From: Piromyces finnis finn
Taxonomy: Eukaryota > Fungi > Neocallimastigomycota
Length of the DNA: 64,000 bases
Assembly (NCBI GenBank): GCA_002104945.1
Contig: MCFH01000006.1
Span: forward strand, 620,001 to 684,000
Direction: 5' to 3'
Shown: positions 22,765-42,818 of the stretch, one piece after another
Numbering within the stretch: the stretch's first letter is position 1
Layout of the letters: each line of letters opens with the position of its first letter
The notes under the pieces: generated by a model
Seen by the model: only the letters and a program-made list of their open reading frames with translations
Databases searched by the model: none
What the model was told of the DNA's origin: nothing
Made by a program: the position numbers and the translations under genes

Positions 22765-23709
22765 CTAGTTAGTTTCAACGATAGTTGGTAAAGTCTTAGT
22801 AGTTTTAATTATAGGTAAAGTTTTAGTAGTTGGAACAACTGGTGCAATTGGTACTTCAGGAGCTTCAGGAGCTTCTGGTAATGATTTTGGAGCAGATGTT
22901 TCTGGAGTAATTGGAGCTTCTGGAGCTTCTGGTAATGACTTTGGAGCTGGTGTTTCTGGAGTAATTGGAGCTTCTGGAGCTTCTGGTAATGACTTTGGAG
23001 CTGGTGTTTCAGGTAATGATTTTGGGGCTGGAGTTTCAGCATCTTCTTCACCAGCTAAAACACTATTTGTTGGTAAAGCCTTAGCTGGTAAGGTTTTAGT
23101 AGATTGAACAATTGGAACTTCTGGACCTACTGGTTCTTGTAATGACTTTGGTGATTGTGTTTCTGGTATAGATTTTGGAGCTGGTGTTTCAAGTAATGAT
23201 TTTGGAGAAGGAGTTTCTGGAATTGACTTTGGAGCAGCTATTTCATCATCTTCTTCAGCAATTAAATTATTCGTAACAGTTGGTAAAGTTTTAGAATGTA
23301 AAGTTTTAGAATGTAAAGTCTTAGTAGTTGGGACTACTGGTGCTATTGGAGCTTCTAGAGTTTCTGATAAAGTCTTTGGAGCTGGAGTTTCTGGAACAAC
23401 TAGTTTATTCAATGATTTTGGAGCTGGTGTTTCTGAAACAATTGGTTCTTTTAATGATTTTGGAGCTGGTGTTTCTGGAACAACTGGTACTTCTGGAACA
23501 ACAGTAGTTTCTGGTAAAACTTTTGGTGGTAAAGTTTTAGTAGATGGAACTACTGGTGCAATTGGTTCAACTGGTTCAATTGGTAAAATAGGTTCAACTG
23601 GTTCAACTGGTGCAATTCCAACTTGAGTTGGTTCTTCATCAGAAATTGGTAAACCAATAGCATTTAAAGATAAAGAAAGAACAATACCGAAAACAAGAGA
23701 GAAACGCAT
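22765..23709 (-). CDS. Secreted Pro/Thr/Glu/Lys-rich repeat protein, copy G1 (314 aa)
   Basis: Intronless ORF with signal peptide MRFSLVFGIVLSLSLNAIG, PAPKS(L/I)PE and TKTLP repeats, and no Cys or Trp. Confidence 0.9.
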   Translation of the reverse strand: MRFSLVFGIVLSLSLNAIGLPISDEEPTQVGIAPVEPVEPILPIEPVEPIAPVVPSTKTLPPKVLPETTVVPEVPVVPETPAPKSLKEPIVSETPAPKSLNKLVVPETPAPKTLSETLEAPIAPVVPTTKTLHSKTLHSKTLPTVTNNLIAEEDDEIAAPKSIPETPSPKSLLETPAPKSIPETQSPKSLQEPVGPEVPIVQSTKTLPAKALPTNSVLAGEEDAETPAPKSLPETPAPKSLPEAPEAPITPETPAPKSLPEAPEAPITPETSAPKSLPEAPEAPEVPIAPVVPTTKTLPIIKTTKTLPTIVETN

Positions 23710-24271
23710 TTTGAAATATTTGTAATAAGTTTACTTTTTAAATTTAGAATTATTTATTTATTATTCTTTTTATTTTTTTATTTTTATAAAAGAATATTAT
23801 TATTATTAAATACAAATTGTATTATAATTATTAAAAAAAAAAGGAAAGGAATTTTACCCTATTTATATTTTTTTTAATAAATATTAATATATTAATAAAT
23901 AATAATTAATTTTAATAATATTTTAATTTTAATAATATATTTTAATAATGAATAATATTAAAACAATTTATTATATATGATTATAATTGAAACCAATTAT
24001 TTATTCATTTCTAATAACAAATATCATAAAATAGGATAAAAAAAAGGAGAATATTTTTATTATGAAAGAAGTAATAATATCATATTAACATGATTTAATA
24101 TAAAAATATAATAATAATTAAAATTTGTAATTATGATATTAATAAATACAAAGAATGAAAATCAATGATAGTAACAAACTTTAAAAATATTTAAAATGAA
24201 TTTTGAACCAATTTTGAATGATAAACGTAACACAATAATATCATAAGGAATATTTTAAATATTTTTGAAAA
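22765..24271 (-). repeat. Inverted-repeat arm (gene plus about 0.56 kb upstream), pairing with 25250-26794
   Basis: 23710-24271 is the near-exact reverse complement of 25250-25813. The same arm recurs at all seven intact copies. Confidence 0.9.
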
Positions 24272-25249
24272 ATAGTAATAAATGTTAATTAGTGATAAAT
24301 GTTACACTCGAATTATTAAAATTCCTTTTTTTTTTCATTTTTTAAAATAATAAAAAATAGCCTTTTACATTTTAAATAAAATTATAATAAAGAACTTTAT
24401 TTAAATTAATAGAAAATTAAATTTTATTGCTTTTTTAATAGTAAAATAATAACTTTTGGAAAAAATAAGTGAAAAAAACTTTATTATTTAATTTCATTAA
24501 TAATTATTGACTAAATAAAAGTGTATTTTTTCTTAATAAGTCATTAATATATTATAAAATGAGAAATATAATTGAAATGATATTTTATTATTATAATTAT
24601 ATTTATATTATAAAAAAAAATAAATTATTAAAAAATTTAAGAAAATTAATATTGAAATAATTAAAAGAAAACAATTAAGAATTAATATTTACAAAAATTC
24701 CAAAATGAAATATTCAATTTTGTAAGAAATATTGATAGAAATAAAAAAATATTATTAATAATTTTTAAAAAAAATCTTTGAAAAATACCAAAATAATTTT
24801 ATCAAATGAAAAAAAAATAATATTGTAAGAACGATATTATTATAATTTAGTATTCTGTCTAATAGTTTTAACTAATAACATTTACATTTGTAAAATTATT
24901 ATATAGTTACAATAAATGTATGTATATATAAAATATATAATATTGGTATACCTAAACAAACAATTATCCTAATTTTCTAACCTTTGAATTATAAATAAAG
25001 AAAGATATTAATAAAGTAATTTTGCCTATCTTTTGAATATAAATACATATAGAGTCATATATAGTATTAAATAAAATAACAATAAATTATAAAGGGTTAG
25101 ATAATAAAAATAAATAAAAATACCATCTTTATTCTTAAAAATTGTTTCAAAGTTATTAAATAAGTATTTTTAATAATCAATAGAATTTGTTTTGAACAAA
25201 TCTTTCCTTTCTATATTTATTTTTATTATAAAAAGCAATTTAATATACT
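24272..25249 (+). repeat. Divergent spacer S1 (forward orientation, X end to Y end)
   Basis: Begins ATAGTAATAAATGTTAATTAGTGATAAATGTTACACTCG (X) and ends ...ATCTTTCCTTTCTATATT...AAAAGCAATTTAATATACT (Y). Reverse-complement homologs lie at about 30450-31415 and 36069-37221. Confidence 0.85.
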
Positions 25250-25813
25250 TTTTTCAAAAATATTTTAAAATATTTCTTATGATATTATTGTGTTACGTTT
25301 ATCATTTAAAATTGGTTCAAAATTCATTTTAAATATTTTTAAAGTTTGTTACTATCATTGATTTTCATTCTTTGTATTTATTAATATCATAATTACAAAT
25401 TTTAATTATTATTATATTTTTATATTAAATCATGTTAATATGATATTATTACTTCTTTCATAATAAAAATATTCTCCTTTTTTTTATCCTATTTTATGAT
25501 ATTTGTTATTAGAAATGAATAAATAATTGGTTTCAATTATAATCATATATAATAAATTGTTTTAATATTATTCATTATTAAAATATATTATTAAAATTAA
25601 AATATTATTAAAATTAATTATTATTTATTAATATATTAATATTTATTAAAAAAAATATAAATAGGGTAAAATTCCTTTTCTTTTTTTTTTAATAATTATA
25701 ATACAATTTGTATTTAATAATAATAATATTCTTTTATAAAAATAAAAAAATAAAAAGAATAATAAATAAATAATTCTAAATTTAAAAAGTAAACTTATTA
25801 CAAATATTTCAAA
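25250..25813 (+). promoter_or_regulatory. Conserved upstream (putative promoter) arm of G2, shared by all copies
   Basis: About 560 bp is retained upstream of each copy (partly deleted at G4). A TATAAATA box lies about 158 bp before the ATG (25656-25663), which is weak evidence in such AT-rich DNA. Confidence 0.45.
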
Positions 25814-40760: not shown

Positions 40761-41047
40761 AATTAAAATTAATTATAATATTATATTTTTTATATTTTTT
40801 ACATTTACTTTATTATATTTAATTTTATTATATTTTTGAATATAAAAAAAAGTCCTTTACATATTTTTTCTAATTTTTATTAATTAAAAGACTGAAATAT
40901 TTATTTTACATAAATAAAAAAAAATAAATATTTACATTTAATTTAAAATTATTAAATCTAAAATTTAAATAACTAATTTTATAATTATTAATTTTTTTAA
41001 TTTTTCATATTTTTTTATGAAATAATGAAATAATGAAATGCTTGTAT

Positions 41048-41992
41048 CTAGTTAGTTTCAATGATAGTTGGTAAGGTCTTAGTAGTTTTAATGACAGGTA
41101 AAGTTTTAGTAGTTTGAATAACAATAGTTTTAGTAGTTGGAACAACTGGAGTAATTAGTACTTCAGGAGCTTCTGGAGCTTCTGGTAATGACTTTGGAGC
41201 TGGTGTTTCTGGAGTAATTGGAGCTTCTGGAGCTTCTGGTAATGACTTTGGAGCTGGTGTTTCTGGAGTAATTGGAGCTTCTGGAGCTTCTGGTAATGAC
41301 TTTGGAGCTGGTGTTTCAGGTAATGATTTTGGGGCTACAGTTTCAGCATCTTCTTCACCAGCTAAAACACTATTTGTTGGTAAAGACTTAGCTGATAAGG
41401 TTTTAGTAGATTGAACAATTGGAGCTTCTGGACCTACTGGTTCTTGTAATGTCTTTGGGGCTGGTTTTTCTGGTATGGCCTTTGGAGCTGGTGCTTCTGG
41501 AGCAACTGATACTTCTGGAGCTTCTGGTATAGATTTTGGAGCTGGTGTTTCAAGTAATGATTTTGGAGAAGGAGTTTCTGGAATTGACTTTGGAACAGCT
41601 ATTTCATCTTCTTCTTCAGCAATTAAATTATTCGTAACAGTTGGTAAAGTTTTAGAATGTAAAGTTTTAGAATGTAAAGTTTTAGTAGATGGAACAACTG
41701 GTGCTATTGGAACTTCAGGAGCTTCTGATAATGATTTTGGAACTGGTGTTTCTGAAACAACTGGTTTATTTAATGATTTTGGAGCTGGCGTTTCTGGAAC
41801 AACTGGTACTTCTGGAACAACAGTAGTTTCTGGTAAAGCTTTTGGTGGTAAAGTTTTAGTAGATGGAACTACTGGTGCAATTGGTTCAACTGGTGTAATT
41901 CCAACTTGAATTGGTTCTTCATCAGAAATTGGTAAACCAATAACATTTAAAGATAAAGAAAGAACAATACCGAAAACAAGAGAGAAACGCAT
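41048..41992 (-). CDS. Secreted repeat protein, copy G7 (314 aa)
   Basis: Intact paralog with X-type upstream and D2-type 3' flank. Confidence 0.9.
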   Translation of the reverse strand: MRFSLVFGIVLSLSLNVIGLPISDEEPIQVGITPVEPIAPVVPSTKTLPPKALPETTVVPEVPVVPETPAPKSLNKPVVSETPVPKSLSEAPEVPIAPVVPSTKTLHSKTLHSKTLPTVTNNLIAEEEDEIAVPKSIPETPSPKSLLETPAPKSIPEAPEVSVAPEAPAPKAIPEKPAPKTLQEPVGPEAPIVQSTKTLSAKSLPTNSVLAGEEDAETVAPKSLPETPAPKSLPEAPEAPITPETPAPKSLPEAPEAPITPETPAPKSLPEAPEAPEVLITPVVPTTKTIVIQTTKTLPVIKTTKTLPTIIETN

Positions 41993-42553
41993 TTTGAAAT
42001 ATTTGTAATAATTTTACTTTTTAAATTTAGAATTATTTATTTATTATTCTTTTTATTTTTTTATTTTTATAAAAGAATATTATTATTATTAAATACAAAT
42101 TGTATTATAATTATTAAAAAAAAAAGAAAAGGAATTTTACCCTATTTATATCTTTTTTAATGAATATTAATATATTAATAAATAATAATTAATTTTAATA
42201 ATATTTTAATTTTAATAATATATTTTAATAATGAATAATATTAAAACAATTTATTATATATGATTATAATTGAAACCAATTATTTATTCATTTCTAATAA
42301 CAAATATCATAAAATAGGATAAAAAAAAGGAGAATATTTTTATTATGAAAGAAGTAATAATATCATATTAACATGATTTAATATAAAAATATAATAATAA
42401 TTAAAATTTGTAATTATGATATTAATAAATACAAAGAATGAAAATCAATGATAGTAACAAACTTTAAAAATATTTAAAATGAATTTTGAACCAATTTTGA
42501 ATGATAAACGTAACACAATAATATCATAAGGAATATTTTAAATATTTTTGAAA

Positions 42554-42818
42554 AATAGTAATAAATGTTAATTAGTGATAAATGTTACACTCGAATTATT
42601 AAAATTCCTTTTTTTTTTTCATTTTTTAAAATAATAAAAAATAGCCTTTTACATTTTAAATAAAATTATAATAAAGAACTTTATAATAAAGAACTTTATT
42701 TAAATTAATAGAAAATTAAATTGTATTGCTTTTTTAATAGTAAAATAATAACTTTTGGAAAAAATAAGTGAAAAAAACTTTATTATTTAATTTCATTAAT
42801 AATTATTGACTAAATAAA
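42554..42818 (+). repeat. Truncated spacer S4 (X end only, forward orientation); right boundary of the array
   Basis: Matches 24272 to about 24520, then homology stops abruptly after AATTATTGACTAAATAAA. Confidence 0.8.

Follow-up and report, generated by a model that had tools for sequence, protein, structure and literature searches.

Does an array of paralogous genes in alternating orientation, held between long inverted repeats, act as a switch that diversifies a secreted protein, or is it a set of independent genes arranged by ordinary recombination? Piromyces finnis, an early-diverging and very AT-rich fungus of the horse gut, carries such an array on contig MCFH01000006.1 (about 642.75-662.82 kb), at positions 22751-42818 of the 64,000-nucleotide stretch analysed here, which we call the window and in which all positions below are given. 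A preliminary description of this DNA proposed a recombination-driven locus that diversifies one secreted or surface protein in the manner of shufflons or variant-surface arrays. We favour, with a probability of roughly 0.65, a gene-dosage cluster shaped by recombination rather than a switch, in which each copy is an independent gene.

Anatomy and content of the array

Seven intact, intronless paralogs follow one another in the strand order -,+,-,+,-,+,-, that is, in both back-to-back and face-to-face arrangement (Table 1). All seven open reading frames are complete, as the preliminary description had stated, and self-BLAST confirmed the inverted-repeat arms and the shared spacers S and T that it reported. 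Each arm consists of a gene with 574 bp of upstream DNA, except for G4 (419 bp) and G6 (550 bp), and measures 1.4-1.6 kb in total. The arms lie head-to-head around a central spacer S, and spacer T separates neighbouring genes tail-to-tail. As a refinement of this scheme, we found that S2, T2 and S3 run opposite to S1, T1 and T3, so that orientations along the array read a,b,b for S, a,b,a for T and -,+,- for the pseudogenes. Both array ends are sharp, the left one at 22751, 14 nt beyond the stop codon of G1, and the right one at 42818, where a fourth S breaks off after 252 bp. The G+C content of the coding sequences (36-38%) stands against 10-14% in arms and spacers; within the latter, the non-coding arms (10-12%) show no G+C enrichment over the spacers (13%).

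Local tblastn recovered exactly three degenerate copies, the number given earlier; every tail-to-tail spacer contains one, and the rest of the 64-kb window has none. These truncated copies are decayed and only ~74-77% identical, and hence do not constitute a donor library. Spacer T1 yielded neither a tRNA nor an Rfam match. Public gene calls inside the array comprise the paralogs only, and the public annotation includes no fewer than six of the seven (293, 314, 294, 281, 314 and 314 aa); no public record of the exact G7 product was found. Pfam scans of the window's open reading frames of at least 150 aa, which a spliced gene with short exons could escape, detected no recombinase or transposase domain, in agreement with the earlier reading of the sequence. 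Outside the array, the frames of this size encode PALP+CBS, M36 fungalysin, pectinesterase, protein kinase and SPRY domains, and one has no family.

Table 1. Genes, spacers, repeat runs and decayed copies of the array (positions in the window; ".", no strand)
Feature	Position	Strand	Description
G1	22765..23709	-	314 aa; leftmost copy; upstream edge alpha; downstream flank unique (array edge)
G1 upstream arm	23710..24283	-	574 bp, 10.8% G+C; inverted match to G2 arm 98.3%
Spacer S1	24284..25237	.	954 bp, orientation a
G2	25814..26794	+	326 aa; upstream edge beta, downstream type a
Spacer T1	26795..29042	.	2248 bp, orientation a; contains psi1
psi1 in T1	27816-28364	-	tblastn match 27880-28173; residual 91-aa ORF 27898-28173
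(ATA)n run in T1	28638-28777		
G3	29043..29888	-	281 aa; hybrid: upstream edge beta, downstream type b
Spacer S2	30463..31411	.	949 bp, orientation b (flipped relative to S1)
G4	31831..32715	+	294 aa; downstream type b; upstream arm only 419 bp
Spacer T2	32716..34562	.	1847 bp, orientation b; contains psi2
(TAT)n run in T2	32989-33359		
psi2 in T2	about 33674-34130	+	tblastn match 33918-34127
G5	34563..35507	-	314 aa; upstream edge beta, downstream type a
Spacer S3	36082..37208	.	1127 bp, orientation b; ~163 bp extra at 36533-36695
G6	37759..38640	+	293 aa; hybrid: upstream edge alpha, downstream type a
Spacer T3	38641..41047	.	2407 bp, orientation a; contains psi3
psi3 in T3	39660-40207	-	tblastn match 39724-40017
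G7	41048..41992	-	314 aa; upstream edge alpha, downstream type b
G7 upstream arm and truncated fourth S	41993..42818	-	574 bp + 252 bp; right array end

The encoded protein and its relatives

The seven proteins (281-326 aa) share 87-93% identity and begin with MRFSLVFGIVLSLSLN(A/V)IG, which is invariant apart from the Ala/Val alternation at residue 17. This N-terminus has the hydrophobicity of a signal peptide (Kyte-Doolittle mean of 1.96 over residues 3-16), and residues 2-19 form the sole helix in an AlphaFold2 model of low confidence (mean pLDDT 48, pTM 0.12) that shows no secondary structure beyond the signal peptide. The product is a putative signal peptide followed by ~290 predicted disordered, acidic, Cys-free residues of Pro/Thr/Glu/Lys-rich repeats: 21% are Pro, 11.5% Thr and 11% Glu, Cys, Trp and Tyr are absent, and 38 acidic residues face 24 basic ones. 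The proline-rich tandem repeats have periods of 9 and 18 aa (27 and 54 nt). No signal for a GPI anchor or covalent wall linkage was seen, the last 20 residues being non-hydrophobic (Kyte-Doolittle mean of -0.06) and the protein free of Cys; judging from these sequence features, the protein is more likely to be soluble or bound non-covalently.

No Pfam family matched. The matches of an exhaustive profile search were confined to P0001, to P0002 (the pseudogene model from this locus) and to one spurious zinc finger, and in a feature-level search all matches scored 0.81 or less and carried no names. Relatives turned up on just two short metagenome contigs, which encode the same signal peptide and repeats of the PETPAPKALPEAP type, and the family so far appears limited to anaerobic gut fungi. 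Three sequencing runs, whose type was guessed as RNA, contain 8-10% of the sampled words of 29000-35600. We infer an extracellular matrix, wall-associated or adhesive protein that would be O-glycosylated and made in quantity; the benefit of dosage, the glycosylation and the extracellular role are all to be understood in this conditional sense. The seven intact copies suggest heavy use, possibly in the wall, the matrix or attachment to plant particles, and the locus flags an uncharacterised family of secreted disordered proteins that offers a lead for secretome work.

Recombination history of the array

Inverted partner arms differ in their similarity, with self-BLAST identities of 98.3% over 870 bp for G1/G2, 95.0% over 1123 bp for G5/G6 and 92.2% over 1168 bp for G3/G4. 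T1 and T3 are 96.5% identical, and T2 is more diverged (83-93% to T1/T3). Because the arms of G1/G2 are more alike than the T spacers (83-96.5%), although the inverted duplication must predate the amplification of the unit, gene conversion between copies is supported by the sequence comparison. The distribution of variants points the same way: 43 informative sites define 21 different bipartitions, 466 of the 903 pairs of these sites are incompatible in the four-gamete test, and the incompatibility clusters along the sequence to an extent reached in none of 2000 permutations (a PHI-type test). Moreover, a 36-nt insertion is common to G1 and G2 only. G6 lacks a 31-residue stretch found in the remaining copies. 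The intragenic repeats of 27 and 54 nt reach unit identities of up to 100%. Pairwise dN/dS ranges from 0.48 to 1.06 and, with a mean of 0.67, gives no sign of diversifying selection among the seven copies.

The flanks of the genes record a further event. The upstream edge towards S is of type alpha in G1, G6 and G7, as well as in G4, where it carries a 140-bp deletion, and of type beta in G2, G3 and G5; the downstream flank is of type a in G2, G5 and G6 and of type b in G3, G4 and G7, those of G3 and G7 being 99.5% identical. G4 and G5 look like whole flipped copies, the former once on the minus and the latter once on the plus strand, and G3 and G6 are reciprocal hybrids with swapped flank types, a combination that a single inversion predicts. 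Its left breakpoint would lie at G3, between about 29490 and 29990, and its right one at G6, between about 37656 and 38160, with the proviso that the lineage markers placing the crossover could themselves be conversion products. When the inversion was reversed in silico, the length of direct-repeat HSPs rose from 25.5 to 37.3 kb and that of inverted HSPs fell from 32.8 to 20.3 kb. Separate flips of S2, T2 and S3, three in all, would result in the same spacer orientations, but they leave the hybrid flanks of G3 and G6 unexplained and are less parsimonious. On our preferred reading, a ~6-kb unit consisting of a minus-strand gene, S, a plus-strand gene and T with its pseudogene was amplified ~3.3-fold in tandem, and one ~8-kb inversion by homologous crossover between G3 and G6 followed.

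A plausible course of events would begin with an ancestral ~6-kb unit, comprising a head-to-head gene pair and an older third copy that has since decayed, which unequal homologous recombination may have amplified in tandem to about 3.3 units. One crossover between the oppositely oriented G3 and G6 would have inverted the block of S2, G4, T2, G5 and S3 together. Ectopic conversion among direct and inverted copies would keep the gene-plus-promoter arms alike, and slippage or unequal exchange at the 27- and 54-nt repeats could account for the gain and loss of peptide modules in frame.

This history bears directly on the idea of active diversification, in which frequent mitotic inversion and conversion continually yield new isoforms of a surface or secreted coat protein or switch its expressed copies. 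Inverted arms that are long and 92-98% identical are good recombination substrates, a minimum of one inversion and numerous conversion tracts have left their mark on the array, the in-frame gains or losses of modules that distinguish the paralogs number eight or more, and some pairs have dN/dS values of 0.9-1.06. The mean is nevertheless below 1, in-frame indels follow automatically from repeat periods of 9, 15, 27 and 54 nt, and a divergence of 2-8% between copies indicates slow rather than rapid homogenisation. Neither a recombinase nor short specific sites were found at the locus; nor are there silent cassettes or a single expression site, a promoter arm, ATG and signal peptide being present on seven of seven copies. 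A single past inversion is enough to explain all the orientations of S and T, without repeated flipping, and we regard active diversification as very unlikely. That the locus rearranges itself, its nested inverted arms letting crossovers flip S, T and larger blocks while conversion reshuffles modules, strikes us as highly improbable. Were it true, a clonal culture (thalli or zoospore lineages) would be a mixture of array isomers secreting different sets of surface or matrix isoforms, and an anaerobic gut fungus would harbour a recombinase-free eukaryotic counterpart of the shufflon. The shaping of the locus by homologous recombination survives from the preliminary description, on the evidence of tandem amplification, one inversion between inverted paralogs, mosaic conversion and in-frame module gain and loss, but its shufflon or variant-surface function does not: that likeness is unsupported because each of the seven complete genes starts with an ATG and a signal peptide of its own behind a near-identical promoter arm, and because the frames scanned contain no recombinase.

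Two further readings do away with a benefit, or with the array itself. Neutral segmental duplication in a recombination-prone, AT-rich and repeat-rich region, with copy number rising to no advantage and some copies perhaps decaying, would fit the weak constraint (dN/dS 0.48-1.06) and the three older copies of the repeated unit that have already decayed. We consider it unlikely, given that all seven frames are complete and the signal peptide nearly invariant despite 2-8% divergence, that the same family N-terminus is kept in two other sequence sources, and that the promoter arms of five of the seven copies are still 97-99.5% identical. An assembly artefact, be it palindrome chimeras of long reads, collapsed or expanded repeats or merged haplotypes, is extremely improbable: many substitutions and distinct in-frame indels separate the copies, the palindrome centres are ~1-kb non-palindromic spacers between arms of 92-98% rather than 100% identity, the array lies 0.64 Mb inside a 1.31-Mb scaffold, and alternating orientation is not expected from merged haplotypes. 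One DNA run contains 63% of the sampled words of 29000-35600, although this best run is probably the assembly's source sample and hence non-independent.

The cluster is of a known kind, its pattern being explained by ordinary duplication, copy-correction and one accidental flip. It introduces no new mechanism by itself; it does provide a compact, readable case of inverted and tandem duplication, conversion and crossover inversion shaping a single cluster, and a test bed for mitotic recombination rates in anaerobic gut fungi.

Comparison with known systems

Shufflons (such as that of R64, with Rci) and the Hin, Gin and Cin invertases are driven by a dedicated, site-specific recombinase that acts on short sites of about 20-30 bp, and in a shufflon a constant gene head or promoter is joined to alternative segments. 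The P. finnis locus resembles them in having segments between inverted repeats, with both spacer orientations present. Unlike in shufflons, S and T are bordered by entire homologous arms of 1.4-1.6 kb instead of short sites, each copy is a whole gene that runs from a separate upstream arm, ATG and signal peptide to a stop codon, and the orientations are explained by one homologous crossover, no recombinase having been found at the locus. In the antigenic-variation systems of trypanosome VSG, Neisseria pilE/pilS and Borrelia vlsE, one expression site is fed by silent, promoterless cassettes. Here, too, a repeat protein that is secreted or at the surface has numerous paralogs with mosaic conversion; the P. 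finnis array, however, has neither an expression site nor promoterless silent cassettes, its copies diverge little (87-93% identity as proteins), and they give no sign of diversifying selection.

A parallel in protein type from another early-diverging fungus is offered by the arabinogalactan-protein-like (AGL) genes of Rhizophagus, which, in the part of the published account drawn on here (PMC8786786), encode proline-rich tandem repeats of low complexity behind a signal peptide, are lineage-restricted with few detectable orthologues, and lie as four or five genes within 10-17 kb, their repeats evolving by local duplication. Both families comprise clustered, small, secreted, disordered tandem-repeat proteins of restricted distribution, and no sequence similarity was found between them. 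Unlike the AGLs as presented in that part of PMC8786786, the P. finnis proteins do not end in a hydrophobic tail suggestive of a GPI anchor, and alternating orientation and inversion are features of P. finnis that the same part does not describe for the AGLs.

In architecture, the array resembles the palindromes of sex chromosomes. Gene-bearing, highly identical inverted arms surround a unique spacer S (949-1127 bp) in P. finnis, just as arms bearing a gene family surround a unique spacer on sex chromosomes, and in both cases conversion keeps the arms similar and occasional crossover resolution inverts the segment between them. Sex-chromosome arms, however, exceed 8-10 kb and 99% identity, compared with ~1.5 kb and 92-98% in P. 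finnis, and carry a testis gene family, whereas the fungal array encodes a secreted protein on an autosome-like scaffold and its non-coding arms lack G+C enrichment. In contrast to the sex-chromosome cases, the P. finnis palindrome is itself tandemly repeated, with tail-to-tail alternating with head-to-head arrangement. The locus is an analogue of the mammalian palindrome class rather than a member of it.

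Architecture and setting of the array

Seven complete ORFs with alternating orientation (G1 to G7, left to right), whose products of 281–326 residues share 87–93% protein identity, and three decayed copies, each within a different tail-to-tail spacer, were recovered by ORF prediction and local tblastn, confirming the array outlined in the preliminary description; local tblastn found no further decayed copies elsewhere in the 64-kb window. The inverted-repeat arms and shared spacers proposed there were likewise recovered by self-BLAST. An arm comprises a gene and 574 bp upstream of it (419 bp for G4 and 550 bp for G6), the spacers between head-to-head arms (S1 to S3) measure 954, 949 and 1127 bp and those between tail-to-tail genes (T1 to T3) 2248, 1847 and 2407 bp, and the array homology ends sharply at 22751 and 42818 (all by self-BLAST). 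S3 carries ~163 bp (36533-36695) absent from S1 and S2, and tRNA and Rfam scans of T1 gave no matches.

Array genes, decayed copies and left neighbours (window coordinates)
Feature	Position	Strand	Evidence or remark
G1	22765-23709	-	complete ORF
G2	25814-26794	+	complete ORF
G3	29043-29888	-	complete ORF
G4	31831-32715	+	complete ORF
G5	34563-35507	-	complete ORF
G6	37759-38640	+	complete ORF
G7	41048-41992	-	complete ORF
Decayed copy in T1	27880-28173	-	local tblastn
Decayed copy in T2	33918-34127	+	local tblastn
Decayed copy in T3	39724-40017	-	local tblastn
Left neighbours: M36 fungalysin metallopeptidase and pectinesterase	12355-14247 and 20351-20836		Pfam; both look secreted

The assembly, GCA_002104945.1, is that of Piromyces finnis Pirfi3, a horse isolate of an anaerobic gut fungus (PMC6690862, PMC6712302). 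With scaffold coordinates equal to window coordinates plus 620,000, the array lies at ~642.75-662.82 kb on MCFH01000006.1 (1.31 Mb), both scaffold ends being distant. The window is very AT-rich, with a G+C content of 13–15% in intergenic DNA versus 36–38% in the array genes. Long imperfect TAT/ATA-type microsatellite blocks at 11129-11487, outside the array, and 32986-33359, in T2, are 83–86% similar to one another, and further runs of this kind lie at 28638-28777 and 40536-40780. The left neighbours, an M36 fungalysin and a pectinesterase (publicly modelled as 328 aa in several exons), also look secreted. Further along, a 696-aa ORF (58748-60838) without a Pfam family adjoins a SPRY-domain ORF (57674-58579) and contains an internal tandem repeat (59911-60271) whose copies, offset by 42 nt, are ~90% identical.

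Amplification, inversion and gene conversion

Self-BLAST reveals direct repeats at offsets of ~5.6–6.5 kb and ~11.8–12.1 kb, and the basic unit is therefore a minus-strand gene, S, a plus-strand gene and T, repeated ~3.3 times. Orientation can be read for S and T, neither of which is palindromic: S1 lies in one orientation and both S2 and S3 in the opposite one, T1 and T3 are direct repeats of one another (96.5% identical) while T2 is inverted, and the pseudogene strands run -,+,- across T1, T2 and T3. Each arm was additionally typed by its two unique edges, the upstream S-edge (alpha or beta) and the downstream flank (a or b), with G1 being half-typed, as alpha upstream, since on its downstream side it meets the unique edge of the array. 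The alpha edge is found in G1, G6 and G7, and also in G4, where the distal 140 bp of the arm are deleted, and the beta edge in G2, G3 and G5; flank a follows G2, G5 and G6, and flank b follows G3, G4 and G7 (99.5% identity between G3 and G7). An undisturbed tandem array would have alpha/b minus-strand genes and beta/a plus-strand genes. G2 and G7 match this expectation, G4 (+, alpha/b) and G5 (-, beta/a) are whole flipped copies, and the remaining two, G3 (beta/b) and G6 (alpha/a), combine the types as reciprocal hybrids.

If the arms of G3 and G6 recombined in one homologous crossover, the block between them would be inverted, and such a single inversion predicts exactly these edge types, together with the concerted flipping of S2, T2 and S3. 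When this inversion was reversed in silico, the HSP total of direct repeats rose from 25.5 to 37.3 kb and that of inverted repeats fell from 32.8 to 20.3 kb. We agree with the earlier proposal that the central block is inverted and that G3 and G6 are the reciprocal products, which the flank types fit; the idea that S itself is an invertible element gives way to the single inversion, which accounts for the same orientations. The crossover is bracketed by a proximal-promoter variant tract common to G4 and G6 and by a 54-nt module that G2, G5, G6 and G7 carry, and would fall in the interval from ~100 nt before the ATG to ~400 nt into the CDS, placing the breakpoints at roughly 29490-29990 in G3 and 37656-38160 in G6, a tentative position because conversion could have moved both bracketing markers.

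Three independent flips, of S2, T2 and S3, would yield the same orientations; they leave the hybrid flanks of G3 and G6 unexplained, however, and are less parsimonious than one inversion. That the whole array is an assembly artefact is unlikely to judge from its sequence: the copies are set apart by numerous substitutions and by private indels, unique spacers of ~1 kb form the palindrome centres, and the array sits deep inside a long scaffold, all of which argue against it.

An older history is preserved in the tail-to-tail spacers. Every T contains a collapsed copy ~74–77% identical to the arms, in which the proximal promoter (~190 bp), the start of the CDS (~217 nt) and the 3′ end plus flanking sequence are retained; thus, the ancestral unit already held three copies, and one of them had decayed by the time the unit was amplified. 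In the public annotation, an 81-aa model (P0002) is placed on one of these decayed copies.

The head-to-head inverted duplication must predate amplification of the unit, yet the arms are so alike that conversion between them is implied: by self-BLAST, the arms of G1 and G2 share 98.3% identity across 870 bp, whereas the tandem T copies reach merely 83–96.5% and parts of S 88–91%. An insertion of 36 nt is confined to G1 and G2. The stretch from the arm edge to the stop codon contains 43 gap-free informative sites, which define 21 different bipartitions; the four-gamete test is failed by 466 of the 903 pairs of sites, and incompatibility between neighbouring sites is lower than in any of 2000 permutations. 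Such clustering of incompatibility is the signature of short exchanged tracts. G+C-biased conversion was sought in the non-coding arms, which showed no G+C enrichment. The mechanism is ordinary homologous recombination, comprising amplification, conversion and one inversion.

The encoded protein, its annotation and its relatives

The signal peptide is the N-terminus, MRFSLVFGIVLSLSLN(A/V)IG, which is hydrophobic and, apart from Ala/Val at residue 17, invariant across the paralogs. Past it, the protein consists of 21% Pro, 11.5% Thr and 11% Glu, is devoid of Cys, Trp and Tyr, and has 38 acidic versus 24 basic residues. Its repeat units of 9 and 18 residues are of the ETPAPKSLPEAPEAPITP type, accompanied by TKTLP motifs, and the underlying DNA repeats of 27 and 54 nt are up to 100% identical to one another. 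AlphaFold2 returned a mean pLDDT of 48 and a pTM of 0.12, with residues 2–19 as the sole helix. The paralog protein has no Pfam match, no N-glycosylation sequon and no apparent GPI signal, its C-terminal tail not being hydrophobic. From these sequence features, we infer a secreted, probably O-glycosylated, extended protein associated with the matrix or wall. Processing into repeat peptides by Kex2 was rejected, as sequences read by eye, rather than by a computed scan, contained no dibasic sites.

At least eight in-frame gains or losses of modules distinguish the paralogs, and the shuffling of modules among them, proposed earlier, is accepted in part. With repeat periods divisible by three, in-frame indels are expected here and are no evidence of selection. 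Pairwise dN/dS values of 0.48–1.06 (mean 0.67) indicate weak purifying selection, with no diversifying signal. Opposite G2, G5, G6 and G7 lie long antisense ORFs (25897-26367, 34990-35424, 37842-38384 and 41475-41909) of 144–180 aa, rich in Gly, Ala, Ser and Thr, which look like by-products of Pro/Glu/Ala codon repeats and not like genes; the sense frame is the one with a signal peptide and with relatives.

At least six of the seven array genes are included in the public annotation. The public G2 model of 314 aa implies a 36-nt splice within the uninterrupted 326-aa ORF and is probably over-fitted; the homologous 36-nt insertion in G1 is annotated as unspliced. In exact-product look-ups, G1 and G5 matched the genome record alone, G2 and G7 had no match, and no transcript assembly was hit. 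Of the words sampled from 29000-35600, 63% occur in one DNA run and 8–10% in three runs for which the label RNA is a guess at the run type.

The family is rare in databases, with a handful of matches from word-indexed and profile searches and a metagenome scan. Word-indexed queries (G2, the protein of contig L003 and the N-terminal 62 residues of G5), an exhaustive profile search covering 1.84 billion representatives, and an Atlas search returned merely a protein, P0001, the array's own pseudogene model P0002, and noise. P0001 is encoded on a 956-nt JGI contig (L001), and the metagenome scan added solely L003, a contig of 1015 nt carrying an ORF of 202 residues. Both proteins start with MRFSVVLGVVLSL and carry PETPAPKALPEAP-type repeats, and the leaders of both contigs are AT-rich, as is typical of anaerobic fungi. 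A promoter motif common to the two contigs is absent from the window at up to three mismatches, and the aligned proximal upstream regions are only loosely similar to those of P. finnis, in a TATA-like region. In L001, the repeat protein gives way at ~nt 630 to an N-terminal fragment of S-adenosylmethionine synthetase of different composition, and the contig is probably a chimeric assembly. In L003, a Pro/Glu/Ala repeat of the same kind restarts in another frame past the stop of the ORF (760-1015), which could be explained by a frameshift error, by a short intron or by a second domain.

Comparison with known systems

A literature search for the locus or its protein found no description in anaerobic fungi, in agreement with the preliminary description, whose view of a recombination-driven locus holds for homologous amplification, conversion and one inversion; programmed diversification is unsupported and improbable. 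Among ORFs of at least 150 aa in the window, Pfam found no recombinase domain, as had been stated, the neighbours encoding a PALP+CBS enzyme, an M36 fungalysin, a pectinesterase, a protein kinase, a SPRY protein and one protein without a Pfam family. The likeness to shufflons and variant-surface arrays fails on this count and others: unlike the short sites of a shufflon, the repeats here are whole gene-plus-promoter arms, and, unlike variant-surface arrays, the locus has neither a single expression site nor silent cassettes.

Functionally, the closest analogue is in Rhizophagus, where four to five clustered, lineage-restricted genes for secreted disordered tandem-repeat proteins lie within 10.7–16.6 kb (PMC8786786); no homology was found between these genes and the P. 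finnis paralogs. Structurally, the array most closely resembles the gene-bearing palindromes of mammalian sex chromosomes, in which conversion frequently acts from arm to arm and inversion by crossover is a rare event (PMC3723533; PMC8327919), although the P. finnis arms are ten-fold shorter and less alike, and its palindrome is itself repeated in tandem.
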